Positions 2,980 to 14,374 of a stretch of 64,000 nucleotides of DNA are shown in pieces. Under the pieces are notes generated by a model. The model saw only the letters and a list, made by a program, of their open reading frames with translations. It did no database searches and had not been told where the DNA came from. The position numbers were made by a program, and so were the translations under genes. Source of the DNA: Trichosphaerium sp. ATCC 40318 (taxonomy: Eukaryota > Protista > Tubulinea); assembly GCA_038496445.1 (NCBI GenBank), contig JALMLS010000268.1, positions 1 through 64,000 of the forward strand, written 5' to 3'. The first letter of the stretch is position 1; every line of letters starts with the position of its first letter.

Positions 2980-3713
2980 AACAAACCGATTTACCTTTGC
3001 TCAATCACGACTTTGTTTTCTTATTGTTTACTAACCAAAGGTGTACATGTTTGCACACAAAAACACAAAGGGAAAGGGTATACAATCATAGTGATAGCTG
3101 CAGTACAGATTTGTCTAAGTACATGTGTGGTAAAGCAATGTGTTGAGGGTGACAGTTAATACGTGCTGTTTGGGACACCCTTTTATTTGTACCTAAACTG
3201 TGTGCTAAAAGCGGTATGTATGTCTAATTTTATCACTGGTGTGGTTTTTATCGTTTTGCACAACAAGCTCGTTGGTGGTGGTGTCAGAGGAGGTGGTGAT
3301 GGTGGGGTTGGTTTTGTTGTTTGTTTTTTTTTCGTTCAATCAAGTGTTCCAAAAAACCACACTTGGTTGTCAGAGAGGTGGTGGGCAACCATGCTTTTTT
3401 TATTTGTTTTTTGAAACTGGTTGTAGAGCGAGCATGTGGGGGAGGGGTTCAAAAACAAAAAACAAGAAAAAAAAAAAGTACTTTAAAAACATTGCGTTGA
3501 GGTGTTTGTCTCAAAAAAAAAAGGGGTGGAATAATGACAAAAGGCAAAGGGGTGGTTGTTACACAAATGATGTACAAAAAAAATAAAAAGAAATGAAAAA
3601 ATGGAAAAATTTCAAAAGTGACGAAAACTGAAAAAAAGTTCCAAAAAGAAGCTGATTTGCGCTATACAGACGTTATAGGATGATACAAGTGAAATATGTA
3701 CAAATATATAACA

Positions 3714-3784
3714 GCGCCGGTGGTGTAGGGGTATCATATGTCCTTGCCATGGATGTGACCCGGGTTCAAATCCCGGCCGGTGCA
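3714..3784 (+). tRNA. tRNA-Gly(GCC)
   Basis: Acceptor stem GCGCCGG/CCGGTGC+A, anticodon arm ATGTCC-TTGCCAT-GGATGT, T arm CCGGG-TTCAAAT-CCCGG; T5 Pol III terminator at about 3792-3796. Confidence 0.95.
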
Positions 3785-4000
3785 ACTCAACTTTTTGCAA
3801 TTGCACATGCCACACACAACATGCTACAAATATTATTTTGCCTCTACAGTGTGCCCATGACCATAGCCTACATGCACAAACCTTTAATTTGGCGTTGCAT
3901 GATTTTGTAATGGCGTGACACTTGTGTGAAGCACTCCCCATATTTTTTACATTTTTTCAAAAAAACTCAAATTTCTGTGATTTCTGTGATTTTTCGAGCG

Positions 4001-4037
4001 GGGGTATCGCATGTCCTTGCCGTGGATGTGCTCCGGG
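4001..4037 (+). pseudogene. Partial tRNA-Gly copy (D-loop end, anticodon arm, 5' T-stem)
   Basis: GGGGTATCGCATGTCCTTGCCGTGGATGTGCTCCGGG matches tRNA 3728-3764 at 32 of 37 positions. Confidence 0.85.
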
Positions 4038-4412
4038 CACATTTTTTTTTTTTAATCGTTTTACCCCTCCCACCACCACCACCACAACAAGCACACCAAC
4101 ACCCCTCTTGCCACCTTTACACCTAAAAAAAAAAAAAAAAAAACTCCCCAAAAGGTATGTATATATTTAAATCCCATGTACTTCAAACCAGTAAACCACA
4201 ACGCGGCCGGGAAGAAAATTCTGATTTGTTTTAAAGCGGAGTAGGCAATATTGGTAACGTACGTGCGTTGCGGTTCGTTTACGGCAATTACAACATAAAA
4301 TTGTACCACACGCTCGCGTTAAATTGTGAGTCCTGAAGCGAGTAGCTGACACTTGGCTGTTCACTATTTTTTATTTATTTTGTACATTTGTGCTTACAGA
4401 AAATTTACACCG

Positions 4413-7549: not shown

Positions 7550-8381
7550 AAACCGTAAGTGCCTTCAAAGGCTTACCAAGGAAACGGGTATTGCCCGTCC
7601 AATGCCTGTTTTAAATAGCCTGGCCAACGAATTTTGCCTTTATCTTTATCACACAAATAGTTGAAGTACCGACCTTTTATCCGAAAGAAGAAGTGATGAT
7701 TGTTTTCCTTTATGAATTGCATGTTGTTCAGAGGTATCTTTTCGCCCTTTGTCCCTAGATAGATACTGAGACACTGTTAGAAGGAGATTTATGCTGTGTA
7801 CCCCACCACCTGTATGTTGACACTTCAATGTTCTTCTTGTTAACCAGCACAATTCTGGATACGAAGCGACACCCGTAAACGTACCTACCCGTCAATAGAG
7901 TACCAGCGGCAAAGGCACAGCTACAAGTGTCAGTTGCACAACGCATAACATGTTGCCTAGGGCGTACGCTAATGGAACTGTGACACGGTGGTAAGAGTTT
8001 CTATCAGTAAGCATCGCCCTGGCATACATATCCGCCGTGTTTGCTAGAAATAAAAGAGATAGACCTGCTCCGACCTGTTGCGGCGTCAAAACGATAAAAT
8101 AACGCGTTTGCATACAGTGAGTGTATTAAAGAAGGCAGATTGGTCAGTTTGAAATAAAATGACGTCTTCGACCTTGTGTTGCGTTCTCTTTATTTTTTTG
8201 AGCGTCTACACAGGATTTAGACAATTTTGAGTGTAACTTTAGTTTACTTGTCTTGTTGAGTGGTAAAAACTACAATGCGTTAATATTCGAGTCAGTATAA
8301 CTTCAAATACCTTCGTTGTAGCTTAATTCGTGATTGGCGTTGAATATTTGACACGCAGTGCGCGCTTACAAGGCCTATCAT
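7550..8381 (-). CDS. TMEM223/TMEM70-like mitochondrial inner-membrane protein; 3' end approximate
   Basis: Manual splicing gives MIGLLQRSFYHSTRQTLKK...DVILFQTDQSAFFNTLTVGAGLSLLFLANTADM...RFVSRIVLVNKKNIEVSTYRWWG: presequence-like N-terminus, two TM segments, and an R.V..I.L...V.T motif recalled from TMEM223. Confidence 0.5.
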
Positions 8382-8495
8382 ATTAGACAAGCATCGTGCG
8401 ACTACTTCAGTTGTCAATCTACACTACAAAATACGAATACAGTCGTGCTGTGTCAAAATACTGTTTTACATTTTTATTGTTAATTACTGTACATT

Positions 8496-9038
8496 TTATA
8501 GGATCGCTTCTGTTGTAGTGCGAAATACGTCACTGGCCACACAGTATTGGTTTGAATTTGTGGAATCTTGTATCAATACAAAAGTTTGGCTGAATTGATG
8601 AACACCAGCGCCATACTCTACTACTCCACTAACGGCTACCATAACCTCGCCTAATGCCAAGTAAGCATTAATTTAAAAACCAACAGCGAGCTAGCAACCT
8701 GCTCTTATGGGTTGTGCGTCTATGGACTGGACTCTATGCTTAGAAGCTGGTAATTCTTTCCACCAATTGCTAATTTCGTTTAACCCGTGTAAACTCCTTC
8801 CATTCCAAACCACTACGCGACATTAGCGTAATCTACTCTTTAGACGCACCTGAAGTAGCTTCCTTGTAGATATTTATTAATTGCTACACCAGAATTAGTC
8901 TTGTAGTCTCTTTTGTTGTTGTACCGCTCTTTTGGCTGAATCAAAGTACTTGTAAAAGTAATCCAGGACGAAAGTCTCGCCACGCCTTGCGTAGCTCGCT
9001 ATATCTTCTGGTGACAGCACTCTCCTCATTCCAAGCAT
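8496..9038 (-). CDS. NXT1: NTF2-related export protein (NXT1/p15)
   Basis: Spliced translation ...GETFVLDYFYKYFDSAKRAQLINIYKEATSVVWNGRSLHGLNEISNWWKELPASKHRVQSIDAQPI...VAVSGVVEY...FSQTFVL...VASDVFR carries the NXT signatures VWNG, LP.S.H, DAQP and SD.FR; three GT-AG introns. Confidence 0.88.
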
Positions 9039-9110
9039 TTGTAACAGATGTGCCTTATGATAGTTAAGCTACGAAGGTTTTGGGCCAAAGTTTTGGTACA
9101 ACGAACCACA

Positions 9111-9896
9111 ATGAGCACAGTATCTCCTTACGACATAAAGTATCTACTAAAAGAGGTTTGTAGTTGCTTTTTTGTTCCTTGTGCTTAGTACGCGTTACTA
9201 GGCTAAGATTCTCGGTGAATCAACTGGTGTACACATATGCTTGTTCGTGACGAGGGAAGGAAGAGTACGTATATCATAGCGCAGTGTAATTGCATTTTAA
9301 CGTTTATAAGTTGCACTCCTATGTCACAAGGAAGTTTTTACCGCTAGTACAAGATTATGCAAGTAAAGTTATGATTGCAAAACTATTAAAGTCTACCCTA
9401 CGTGGCGGCTTGGTACAAGGTACGTTACTCGTATGCAGCATAATCCGACAGCGCTTAGATGCCACTGATCAACCAATACCGGAAGACGAAGAAGCAGTTG
9501 CAGAGTTTATCAAAGATAGAACAGCTAGGCTAGCGAAATTCCAAACTTCACTACAAGCAATTAAAACGCGAGTAAGTCATTTACTCGGCATCCGGTGGTA
9601 TTTACTGTATCGTAGTTAACGCCAAGAATTAAACCAAGTCACCCAAATGGAGAAGAAGCATTATTGATTGTGGCTGCTCCAGGTGGTCAGATATTCAGGT
9701 AAGACAAATAAAGTATTTCGACGTCTTATAGTATTCCAGAGTGAGTTCTCCTGCTTTTGAACCTATGGTTGGCACACAGGAAGGTCAAAAGATGTTCCAA
9801 GCACTCCTATCAGCTCCCGATGATCACGAATACAAGCCTGCAATAACACCTAATCCAATTGAACATCTACACAAGAACTTTGATAAGCCAATTTAA
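9111..9896 (+). CDS. Protein with two tandem degenerate SRF/Mcm1-type MADS domains (189 aa)
   Basis: Exons 9111-9155, 9202-9264, 9311-9419, 9459-9571, 9616-9698 and 9740-9896 (all GT-AG) give a continuous 570-nt frame; both halves align by eye to the SRF/Mcm1 core. Confidence 0.75.
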
Positions 9897-10007
9897 ATGG
9901 TACCTTGTACAATAAACCCAAACATTTTGTGTTATAAAATGGAGCCACAGTTTACAGAAGCTGTCGTTCAGAGTGAGAATGTAAACATACTTATTGAAAC
10001 CTCACAT

Positions 10008-12243
10008 TTATTGAGATGGGATTGCACAAACATTTTCAACTTTCTCGATAAACTTGATGTTCATAGTTTCGAGTTCATCCAAAATTGGATTGTACAATTC
10101 AGGAATTGTTGGGATTTGTAATCCAGTGAGCTTGATTTTACCTTCCAAAACAAGACGGACAGTAATAGCAACAGGCAAAGAAACCTAAAAAGGCAAAACT
10201 AATAAATATTTGGAAACAACGAAAACTAAGACATACAGTTCTGCTCATTGATGAGTCACCGTTCTTAATACCAAAGTCAATCAATTTGGAGGTAATGGTC
10301 TAAATTACAATTAACACTTGTGACAGCTGGTTCAAAACGTACATGGCGCTCGTTCTTTTCTGGATAATCAGCAGTGAAGGTATGCTTCATCAACAACATG
10401 TCACGTTCACCTTTGACAAATGTTAACAAATCACTGCTATTGGAATGACTGTACCTTCAGCATATCTCATTTTATCAATCATAATGTGACACAAAGCGTC
10501 CAAAATGGTGTCAATACCAGCAGGTATCTAAAGAAAAAGTAAGATCTTTGAAAAATCGAAGGTTCAGCAATCAAAGCTCCTCACCTTTTCGTCTTCGTAC
10601 AAACCCAACCATGTCATGGCATCCTTGATGCTCTTTTCAGTTTCCTATAAATCACTAAATACAACATTCTACTAATAATACAAATAATGATACGTACAGC
10701 ATCCTTTGGTTTTACGGTACTACCAGATACAAGTTTTGTAGTAAGTTTATTGTATGTGGTACCAGACAAATCAGTCTTATCCAAAGAGAGGTACCCTTTT
10801 ATGGTTTGTTAGTTTACAAATCAACAGTATGGAATGGTCTACTCTATCTTCGAGTTTCGAATTTACCTCCAACTACTATCTCGTGGCAAGTCAAGGTGTT
10901 ACTTGAAGAGAAAACCTCAACAATACAACACACAGGCCAGAGAACTCTCGCGGAGGATACAAACAAAGATTTTCGATTACAAAGTAAAACGTCGCAAAAT
11001 CACGTGACAAAACTGTAAAACTTACCGATATCAGCGAACCTCTTCACAACAGCGCACCACCCTATTGAATAAATCAATGGAGAGAAATATAAGAAGAATA
11101 GTACCTTTGTTACGGTAAGTACCACGAATCATGGTCTTGCAGTCTTTAAGGCCGTAGATGTCTATGTATTTAGTGCTGTCGCGGTTAGGGTATACCTCGT
11201 ATTCACCCATATCACCGACGGATTCAACAGAGTAGCTATCAAACAAGTCTCCACCTCCAATAGTACATTTCTTACCATCTCTATTTCAGAATTAACATAG
11301 ATTGATTGGTGTCGTTCGTACTTGAGGAAAGTAGCAGAGTTTCGGCTCGCCAAAAGTACACCGCGAGGTGCCCAAGAAAATTTGTATCCGAAAGGGTTGT
11401 TGTTGTCTTCTGGAGCTGGGAGACCGCCGCAGTAGCTGGTAAAGCCAGTAATCTTACCGCCCTCCTTTGTCACAGAGTTGATGACGCGCATGGCACTAGA
11501 AGAGTGAGACGCGAAATAGGCGCATAAATTATAAAACGCAAAAAGATGTCAAAAACTCAGTGGGATTTTATAATCATAAGTCATTGGAAACCTGTGTTAT
11601 TCTATCATCGCATTTTAGGGAAATTTGTGGAAAATACAGCTATAATGCGAATTTTCAAGCGAATATAACGTTATACTATAGTGCGGCTATGACGAACCTC
11701 ATGTGATCGGTACCAGGGTCTACGCCACATTCGTTAAGGAGAATAATGCCAGCATCTTTAGCTTGTTGTTCGAGCTCTTTCATAGCATCTGACACGTATG
11801 AAGTGGTGAAAAAATTGATTCTAAAAGAAGTTAGTACATATTAAAGTAGGAAAAAAGTTGTGACACGCGTCTAGCAGTTTTGTAGTTTGCGAACGCCAAT
11901 AACGTAGAAACGTACTTGAATTCAATGGCGACTTTAGCGACAGCGACATGGTGGATGTATGGCAATAAGGAGACAATAGCAGAAAATTTTGTCTAGGCAG
12001 TGTTAAACGTGATAACATTGCGCAGAAAGGTACCTCAGCTAGCAATTTAGCGAGTTTTTCCAAACCGTCTTTCTCTACGTCGATTTGTACTGCTTTAGTG
12101 TTCTTAATGCCTGCGATTAGTTTTTGAGCTTTTTCTAAGCCTCTAGAACCAACATAGACGCTATAGTCATTGTCGGACATATATTGTACGATTGGCTTTG
12201 TGACATAGCCAGCACCAAGAATGAGAACGTTTCCTTTGGACAT
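10008..12243 (-). CDS. LYS9: Saccharopine dehydrogenase (NADP+, L-glutamate-forming)
   Basis: VLILGAGYV Rossmann motif, NECGVDPGTDHM, SYCGGLPAPEDNNNPFGYKFSWAPRGVLLA, YPNRDS, IRGTYR, SSMSRTVSLPVAI, LYNPILDEL. Confidence 0.95.
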
Positions 12244-12410: not shown

Positions 12411-13133
12411 ATGACAACTATACAACTCAAAAGCGGTTGCGTTATTACAAGTTACGAGCAGTTCTTAACACAAAAAGAAGCCACGGAGCTGTTTAACGTG
12501 CTAGAAAAAAAACCGAGTTGTACAATAGACTGGAGGCAAAAGAAGGTTCATGTTGGCGATCGAGAGGTGACTGAACCACGATTTACGGCTTTCTTGGGAG
12601 AACGAGATGGCTTAGACTACAAATACAGTGACACTGTAAATACATCGCAAAAGTGGCCTGCTGCGGTTGAAGAGGTGAAAGATAAGATAGAAAAGGTGAC
12701 TGACCAATGTTTTAATGTGGTGTTGCTTAATTGGTACCAAAACGGGTCTCATCACGTTGGATGGCATGCTGACGCTGAAGAGGATCTTGTAGAAGGTGCT
12801 GTTATAGCTTCCCTCTCGTTAGGTGCAACGCGTACGTTTCAGCTGCGACACCTTGATGACAGCCAAAAGGGCGCGTTAAAAACTCAAGCGCATACTAAAA
12901 GAAGGAAAGGTATTGCCTTGACGCCGCAAGAGACCGAAGTGCTGGATTACGCTCCTGGTGAAGATCCTGAAATGAATCGATCAATGCTTGTTTGTCACGG
13001 AGATTTGTTGATTATGGGTAATACTTTGCAGCGTTACTGGAGGCACCGTGTTCCTCGTGAAAAAGGTGATGTTGGTCCACGCATTTGTATGACTTTTAGG
13101 CTTGTCAAACAATCAAGTATAGATAGTAAGTAG
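12411..13133 (+). CDS. AlkB-family Fe(II)/2OG dioxygenase (ALKBH2/3-like), intronless
   Basis: FNVVLLNWY, WHAD (HxD), IASLSLGATRTF, WRHRVP, RICMTFR; first ATG at 12411. Confidence 0.92.
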   Translation: MTTIQLKSGCVITSYEQFLTQKEATELFNVLEKKPSCTIDWRQKKVHVGDREVTEPRFTAFLGERDGLDYKYSDTVNTSQKWPAAVEEVKDKIEKVTDQCFNVVLLNWYQNGSHHVGWHADAEEDLVEGAVIASLSLGATRTFQLRHLDDSQKGALKTQAHTKRRKGIALTPQETEVLDYAPGEDPEMNRSMLVCHGDLLIMGNTLQRYWRHRVPREKGDVGPRICMTFRLVKQSSIDSK

Positions 13134-13352
13134 CGTAAATAAATTATTAAAGTGTGTAAAATCAGAATTTTCTTCCCGGCCGCGTTGTGGTTTACTGGTT
13201 TGAAGTACATGGGATTTAAATATATACATACCTTTTGGGGAGTTTTTTTTTTTTTTTGTTTTGTAGGTGTAAAGGTGGCAAGAGGGGTGTTGGTGTGCTT
13301 GTTGTGGTGGTGGTGGTGGGGAGGGGTAAAACGATTAAAAAAAAAAAATGTG

Positions 13353-13389
13353 CCCGGAGCACATCCACGGCAAGGACATGCGATACCCC
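13353..13389 (-). pseudogene. Partial tRNA-Gly copy in the right arm
   Basis: Reverse complement of 4001-4037. Confidence 0.85.
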
Positions 13390-13605
13390 CGCTCGAAAAA
13401 TCACAGAAATCACAGAAATTTGAGTTTTTTTGAAAAAATGTAAAAAATATGGGGAGTGCTTCACACAAGTGTCACGCCATTACAAAATCATGCAACGCCA
13501 AATTAAAGGTTTGTGCATGTAGGCTATGGTCATGGGCACACTGTAGAGGCAAAATAATATTTGTAGCATGTTGTGTGTGGCATGTGCAATTGCAAAAAGT
13601 TGAGT

Positions 13606-13676
13606 TGCACCGGCCGGGATTTGAACCCGGGTCACATCCATGGCAAGGACATATGATACCCCTACACCACCGGCGC
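13606..13676 (-). tRNA. tRNA-Gly(GCC), second copy
   Basis: Exact reverse complement of 3714-3784. Confidence 0.95.
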
Positions 13677-14374
13677 TGTTATATATTTGTACATATTTCA
13701 CTTGTATCATCCTATAACGTCTGTATAGCGCAAATCAGCTTCTTTTTGGAACTTTTTTTCAGTTTTCGTCACTTTTGAAATTTTTCCATTTTTTCATTTC
13801 TTTTTATTTTTTTTGTACATCATTTGTGTAACAACCACCCCTTTGCCTTTTGTCATTATTCCACCCCCTTTTTTTTTTGAGACAAACACCTCAACGCAAT
13901 GTTTTTAAAGTACTTTTTTTTTTTTCTTGTTTTTTGTTTTTGAACCCCTCCCCCACATGCTCGCTCTACAACCAGTTTCAAAAAACAAATAAAAAAAGCA
14001 TGGTTGCCCACCACCTCTCTGACAACCAAGTGTGGTTTTTTGGAACACTTGATTGAACGAAAAAAAAAACAAACAACAAAACCAACCCCACCATCACCAC
14101 CTCCTCTGACACCACCACCAACGAGCTTGTTGTGCAAAACGATAAAAAAACGCCCTTGTAAAGACAAACTTTGCACAATGTTCCACACCCAAACAACACA
14201 GACAACGGCACAAGATTATGAGGAAAGCCAGCAAAAAACAACACAGTGCGCACCACACGTGGTTTGTAACACATGTCATAGTCTTGTGCCGTTAAACTAG
14301 CTGTGTTGGTTTGGTATGAGTGAGCCTTTCACCGTGACCTGTATTGACAACAATTGTAACGGCAAACCTCAACG

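Follow-up and report, generated by a model that had tools for sequence, protein, structure and literature searches.

The window, a stretch of 64,000 nt of DNA, contains what is probably a real, lineage-restricted gene, in which two diverged SRF/Mcm1-type modules stand in one chain and would form an intramolecular pseudo-dimer with a regulatory role. MADS factors work only as dimers, and the symmetry of their DNA sites derives from that of the dimer. Judged by its sequence, the product is a new architectural variant of the known MADS family, whose mechanism we infer.

The coding sequence lies in six GT-AG exons on the plus strand (9111-9896). Joining them reproduces the gene model of the original prediction, a 570-nt CDS that encodes a 189-aa product and ends in TAA. 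Five introns (46, 46, 39, 44, and 41 nt) are removed, each of them GT..AG. The peptides that had been named half 1 and half 2 match residues 12-62 and 88-165 letter for letter. A codon log-odds model, for which the window's other long stop-free stretches served as the training set, scores the CDS at +49.9 bits in frame, compared with -99 and -109 out of frame, and all six exons are positive in their own frame. The surrounding DNA is AT-rich and eukaryotic (GC about 0.34-0.41) with very short introns. Splice junctions 1, 2, and 5 are supported independently of RNA, because the homology described below is ungapped or nearly so across them. Exon 1 is the least supported exon, and the SRF alignment takes in only LLKE of it (residues 12-15). 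The coordinates of the exons, the two modules, and the neighbouring genes are listed in Table 1.

Table 1. Features of the MADS-like gene and its neighbours (positions in the window)
Feature	Position	Strand	Remarks
Leader, 21 codons in frame, own ATG	9048..9110	+	MCLMIVKLRRFWAKVLVQRTT; 10 bp away from the start codon (ATG) of the divergent NTF2-like gene
Exon 1 (residues 1-15)	9111..9155	+	ATG at 9111; donor GTTTGT; coding score +2.7 in frame
Exon 2 (residues 16-36)	9202..9264	+	end of helix 1, TG turn, and strand 1 of half 1; both junctions crossed by the SRF alignment
Exon 3 (residues 37-72)	9311..9419	+	strand 2, TRKFLP kink, and SAM helix of half 1; then start of the linker
Intron 3	9420..9458	+	39 nt, GTACGT..TTAG; in frame, without stops
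Exon 4 (residues 73-110)	9459..9571	+	acidic linker DQPIPEDEEAVA; N-terminal part of helix 1 of half 2 EFIKDRTARLAKFQTSLQAIKTR
Exon 5 (residues 111-137)	9616..9698	+	proline-rich LTPRIKPSHPNG replacing KKAYELSVLTG; then strands 1 and 2 of half 2
Exon 6 (residues 138-189 and TAA)	9740..9896	+	SSPAFEPMVGTQEGQKMFQALLSAPDD, SAM region of half 2; 23-aa tail
MADS-like module 1 (residues 12-65)	9144..9397	+	shortened; starts at the position of SRF IMKKAYELS
MADS-like module 2 (residues 86-166)	9497..9824	+	full length relative to Mcm1 residues 22-99
NTF2-domain (NXT1-like) gene	8499..9038	-	ATG at 9038; Pfam NTF2 E=1.3e-5
Saccharopine dehydrogenase, downstream neighbour	10001-10300 region	-	intron 10183-10234, 52 nt, spliced in RNA
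AlkB-type 2OG-Fe(II) dioxygenase	12411-13130		single exon

When the whole protein was compared with the PDB sequences, only three distinct sequences were matched, and all of them are SRF-type MADS cores. No MEF2-type chain was among the PDB matches at E≤10 for either half. The match of half 2 to Mcm1 (1mnm_A) has E=1.9e-8 and 37.6 bits, with residues 86-166 of the query on residues 22-99 of the chain. SRF follows at E=7e-4 (1k6o_B) and E=2.4e-3 (1hbx/1srs). The pairwise score of half 2 with Mcm1 is 121 (p about 3e-14 in a shuffle test), and hhalign with a two-sequence Mcm1+SRF profile gives 97%, E 1.1e-10, over 76 columns. From the TG turn on, half 2 is very Mcm1-like: SSPAFEPMVGTQEGQKMFQALLSAPDD and STPKFEPIVTQQEGRNLIQACLNAPDD are 59% identical over 27 aa, and exon 6 is found by tblastn with Mcm1 at E=3.6e-7. 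By these alignments half 2 is a clear homologue of the SRF-type MADS+SAM module.

In half 1 the likeness is shorter. With residues 1-84 alone as the query against the PDB sequences, SRF is the top match (E=0.009 and 0.013), and Mcm1 appears further down (0.64). The register is the expected one, residues 12-65 lying on SRF IMKKAYELS...CLNS. The Smith-Waterman score against SRF is 75 vs 24.4±4.7 for 5000 shuffles (fitted p about 6e-7); against Mcm1 it is 59 (p about 5e-5). The same two-sequence profile in hhalign gives 70%, E 4e-5, over 53 columns. Half 1 starts with the last third of helix 1 (LLKEAKILGESTG on IMKKAYELSTLTG) and retains strand 1, strand 2, TRKFLP (TRKLQP in SRF), and the SAM helix. 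Its residues 1-11 have no match in the SRF/Mcm1 alignments. As originally described, the N-arm and the start of helix 1 are missing; in the PDB alignment no N-arm can be recognised, and helix 1 has lost its first two thirds. The homology of half 1 to SRF-type MADS is weaker than that of half 2 but real.

Both halves were said to keep the beta-hairpin and the SAM helix. The alignments cover both elements and the conserved Pro kink too, and in each half they run through the SAM-type second helix of SRF/Mcm1, ..P(M/I)(I/V)....G..(L)IQ.CLN... The Pfam model PF00319 (SRF-TF) weights, and is centred on, the basic helix. This profile had been proposed as a check on each half, with the lack of a hit counted against the prediction, and the outcome was unfavourable: hmmscan found no match to PF00319 in residues 1-97 or 81-189 at E≤10. 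A match to a Pfam phage tail tube family (E=0.22) was set aside as chance. We do not take the PF00319 blank as refuting the assignment, because the phmmer and hhalign matches to the solved Mcm1 and SRF are significant, and they are in register for both halves. A possible explanation of the blank is that the best-kept part of the protein is the hairpin and SAM region, away from the basic helix on which the model is centred. The SRF class is defined by a second helix of the SAM type after the hairpin, not of the MEF2 type (PMC10484287). We conclude from the alignments that both halves descend from SRF-type MADS+SAM modules.

The two halves are encoded in one ORF. The bridge between them (exon 3, intron 3, and exon 4) is one stop-free stretch (ORF 9290-9619). 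As intron 3 is in frame and free of stops, the halves are linked whether it is spliced or retained. When it is retained, 13 aa (GTLLVCSIIRQRL) are added to the inter-module linker and the architecture is unchanged; this form is a possible alternative isoform. No Met is present between M57 and M146. Half 2, which lacks a start codon, is therefore not easily made alone. The linker (residues 66-87) has about 20-22 residues and a net charge of -5. Aligned locally with each other, the halves show a weak likeness (p=0.08), and through the SRF register they are about 24% identical by hand count. Their intron positions differ as well. The weak mutual likeness and the differing intron positions suggest that the halves arose by an ancient duplication or from the fusion of two paralogues and not as a recent repeat. 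No further MADS-like coding piece and no canonical MADS gene was found elsewhere in the window.

It was claimed originally that there is no room for an upstream exon. The 72 bp between the ATG of the MADS-like gene and that of NXT1 are exact (9039-9110, with starts at 9111 and 9038), and a search for the missing N-terminal MADS exon in the plus-strand frames of 7900-9110 and in the rest of the window found none. A qualification is the in-frame ATG at 9048, which would extend the gene by 21 codons, so that the 5' end is less firmly fixed than had been stated. This leader may be untranslated (5' UTR), may provide an alternative start, or may be what is left of the lost N-terminus of half 1. In the register of the downstream alignment, its KVLVQRT falls on Mcm1 KFIENKT, scoring +6 over 10 positions (p about 0.025) and -10 over all 21. 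The PDB alignment of half 1 did not extend into the leader (9048-9110). This likeness to the Mcm1 N-terminus is not significant, and we do not claim the leader as a relic of the N-arm.

The upstream ATG also bears on the possibility that the gene model is wrong, with the halves ending up in separate products because of an alternative promoter or alternative splicing, or with extra exons in the true protein. RNA joints within the gene were not observed, and exon 1 gives only four aligned residues. We consider such an error very unlikely. The bridge from exon 3 to exon 4 is open in either form, half 2 lacks a start codon, and the plus-strand frames of 7900-9110 and the rest of the window hold no MADS N-terminal peptide. 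Furthermore, the only flanking intron confirmed by RNA is 52 nt and the modelled ones are 39-46 nt, so that one long enough to span the NTF2 gene would be out of the ordinary.

In the SRF and Mcm1 dimers, each chain contributes its hairpin to a common sheet, the SAM helices lie on top of it, and the pair of helices 1 lies on the DNA (1SRS, 1MNM, 1HBX). In half 2 of the 189-aa protein, an acidic segment (PEDEEAVA) takes the place of the basic N-arm. The alignment with Mcm1 has QTSL for SKRK and TR for KK, in agreement with the loss of these DNA-contact residues in the original prediction. A 3-residue insertion and three prolines (LTPRIKPSHPNG) stand at the place of KKAFELSVLTG, the C-terminal part of helix 1. 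The residues that contact DNA are R143, K163, R164, and K165 in SRF, and R18-K20 and K38-K40 in Mcm1. These canonical contacts, the basic N-arm and those of helix 1, are replaced in half 2, and half 1 lacks the region altogether. In half 2, the stretch corresponding to helix 1 (residues 88-122) is still basic, with a net charge of +6 and a pI of 11.6; the same stretch has +7 in Mcm1 and +5 in SRF. This weakens the proposal that the protein may no longer bind CArG DNA: the canonical contacts have gone, but a basic surface is left, and a loss of binding does not follow. With a net charge of +6 in this region, the term non-DNA-binding may be wrong.

The upper surface of SRF/Mcm1 binds cofactors, and its layout is that of a two-chain sheet with a SAM layer (PMC10484287, together with the structure papers). 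In the single-chain protein, the two hairpin-plus-SAM layers would pair inside the chain to give a MADS-like pseudo-dimer, and the linker of ~22 residues should be long enough to join both modules. The top surface, made of the sheet and the SAM helices and serving as the cofactor side in SRF/Mcm1, would be intact. The DNA-binding layer would be lopsided, since module 1 keeps the last third of helix 1 and the interface part of helix 1 in module 2 is broken by the three prolines. The idea that the helix-1 pieces left in the two halves are those in mutual contact in the dimer was considered and dropped, as it depends on coordinates for the way in which the helices cross. Such a lopsided protein presumably could not read a palindromic CArG box as the canonical dimer does. 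The most likely function, as far as sequence can indicate it, is a regulatory one, in which the protein would either sequester or scaffold partners of the organism's canonical MADS factors or bind DNA via the single remaining basic helix, with an altered, half-site-like specificity.

The retention of both dimerisation layers in the alignments, with the DNA-contact positions lost, would also suit a protein that acts between molecules. Each half could pair with a canonical SRF-type monomer and make DNA-binding-defective heteromers, so that the protein would be a dominant negative. Natural SRF-type heterodimers exist, for example Mcm1-Arg80. Dominant-negative MADS isoforms are discussed in PMC5853260, and a role of this kind has been proposed for FLM-delta. 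We regard this poisoning of canonical factors as unlikely, because tethering makes the local concentration of the partner very high, and such a partner would normally out-compete free monomers. The organism's canonical MADS gene, moreover, was not found in the window.

The original prediction had proposed a search for two-MADS orthologues. Such searches were possible in limited databases, and in the protein databases covered neither an orthologue nor another tandem-MADS protein was found. A word-based homologue search among 5.8 billion proteins gave no match, whether the query was the full protein or region 86-168; this is largely explained by the E-value scale at that number of proteins, as the match to Mcm1 itself has ~38 bits. 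A scan of JGI metagenomes for orthologues gave 416 pattern matches, of which none was confirmed. Two repetitive proteins were returned by an exhaustive phmmer search with an 87-aa piece (exons 3-4 with intron 3) and proved to be unrelated in a local phmmer comparison with the full protein. Phage matches at 0.61 in the ESM Atlas, obtained with exon 6 alone, are meaningless. As evidence that orthologues are absent, these blanks are weak; the protein collection does not include this genome, and the nearest relatives sampled are distant. Since no orthologue was found, conservation, and so function, is unproven. For Dictyostelium, the best-studied amoebozoan, four ordinary MADS genes are described (PMC3640940).

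The RNA evidence consists of assembled contigs from four RNA runs. Over the gene there is one 151-nt contig (9817-9965, depth 2). These contigs cover only 9817-9965, at the 3' end, and contain no splice joints of the gene, so the RNA check that had been suggested for the six exons did not show them joined. In the same runs, the neighbouring saccharopine dehydrogenase gene has a depth of about 47, with its 52-nt intron removed. The 151-nt contig comes from a slightly different strain. It has two differences in the CDS, at 9851 and 9867, and both are synonymous (P175 and L181), which is suggestive, at two sites only.

Shallow RNA and the lack of orthologues in the protein-database and JGI metagenome searches would be expected of a decaying or neutral lineage-specific duplicate, in which part of a MADS gene was duplicated and fused to a diverged copy, with an open frame and no function. 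The shortening of half 1 and the disruption of helix 1 of half 2 by prolines fit this as well, and RNA support is almost nil. We nevertheless find decay improbable, as the frame is intact over six exons and five canonical introns, the coding score is positive in every exon, and the hydrophobic core positions are kept in both halves. That both coding differences between strains are synonymous (2/2) argues in the same direction, from a very small sample.

The neighbourhood of the gene offers some further observations. RNA of the saccharopine dehydrogenase gene, at 99-100% identity, occurs in runs that carry three different organism labels. Possibly the source organism is a passenger or contaminant in the libraries of other organisms, or is filed under several names. 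The best eukaryotic relatives of the AlkB-like gene are 45-53% identical and are found in EukProt transcriptomes, including that of Pharyngomonas kirbyi (45%), and on eukaryote contigs of JGI metagenomes. The remaining matches are all bacterial (31-38%), and a bacterial ancestry of this gene is therefore possible. The AlkB-like gene was tried as a route to synteny and the route was abandoned; a 183-kb JGI contig with a relative shares no other gene with the region. A ~9-kb block with the MADS-like, NTF2-like, saccharopine dehydrogenase, and AlkB-like genes is bracketed by near-identical inverted repeats (3304-4227 and 13159-14088). Their 559-nt core is 100% complementary and their further arms 89-99%. 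Each repeat contains a tRNA-Gly(GCC), at 3714-3784 on the plus strand and at 13606-13676 on the minus strand.

A bolder form of the pseudo-dimer reading can be put forward tentatively, with the balance somewhat against it. The protein may be a natural single-chain MADS pseudo-dimer and the first obligate MADS homodimer internalised through duplication or fusion, with one DNA-reading half deleted. It might then be an asymmetric half-site reader, or a pure cofactor-binding decoy for the canonical SRF pathway of an amoebozoan-like protist. A tethered asymmetric MADS protein, if true, would show the scope of the fold once the symmetry constraint is lifted. It would be a test of which layer, helix 1 or the sheet and SAM helix, serves partner binding and which serves DNA binding. 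It would also bring MADS into the short list of dimeric DNA binders turned into single-chain pseudo-dimers. If the gene is an unexpressed orphan, it is just a curiosity of gene birth and decay.

Full-text literature was searched for tandem, double, single-chain, or pseudo-dimeric MADS proteins, and it returned only remarks in plant surveys and unrelated uses of the phrases. The statement that no protein of such architecture has been described holds for the databases and literature searched, where the only remark concerns almond PdMADS15 (PMC9601849). PdMADS15 is similar in having two MADS matches in one predicted protein. It differs in that its domains are canonical and Pfam-positive; moreover, it is an annotation from a gene-family survey, made without a structural or functional claim, and may be a fused gene model.

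Id proteins are dominant-negative inhibitors of bHLH proteins. FLM-delta (PMC5853260) and Id-type HLH inhibitors resemble the 189-aa protein in that the dimerisation surface is kept and DNA contact is lost, and a decoy or inhibitor role is possible in its case. Unlike it, they are single-module proteins which act by heterodimerising, and none of them has two MADS modules.

The closest likeness in detail is to Mcm1 and SRF (PDB 1MNM, 1SRS, 1HBX, 1K6O). Half 2 aligns to Mcm1 22-99 at 37% identity, with the FEP..QEG...Q..L.APDD block nearly intact, and in half 1 the SRF alignment runs from IMKKAYELS to CLNS and takes in TG, the hairpin, and TRK..P. While Mcm1 and SRF have one homodimerising module, the 189-aa protein has two per chain and lacks both the basic N-arm and a long C-terminal activation region. 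It is PF00319-negative in both halves. QTSL stands for SKRK in half 2, a region that half 1 lacks, and the helix-1 interface segment of half 2 has three prolines.

TBP, with its two repeats, and the doublet histones are single-chain pseudo-dimers derived from dimeric DNA binders. There, as would be the case here, an obligate dimer became a single chain through duplication or fusion, and its halves were free to diverge asymmetrically. The fold is a different one, and for the 189-aa protein the pseudo-dimer is a conjecture. Another comparison is offered by yeast Mcm1-Arg80, two paralogues of SRF type which are separate polypeptides and both bind DNA. In both systems two diverged SRF-type units would act as one functional pair, as is established for the yeast heterodimer and supposed for the 189-aa protein, whose halves, unlike those of Mcm1-Arg80, are covalently linked and one of which is shortened.
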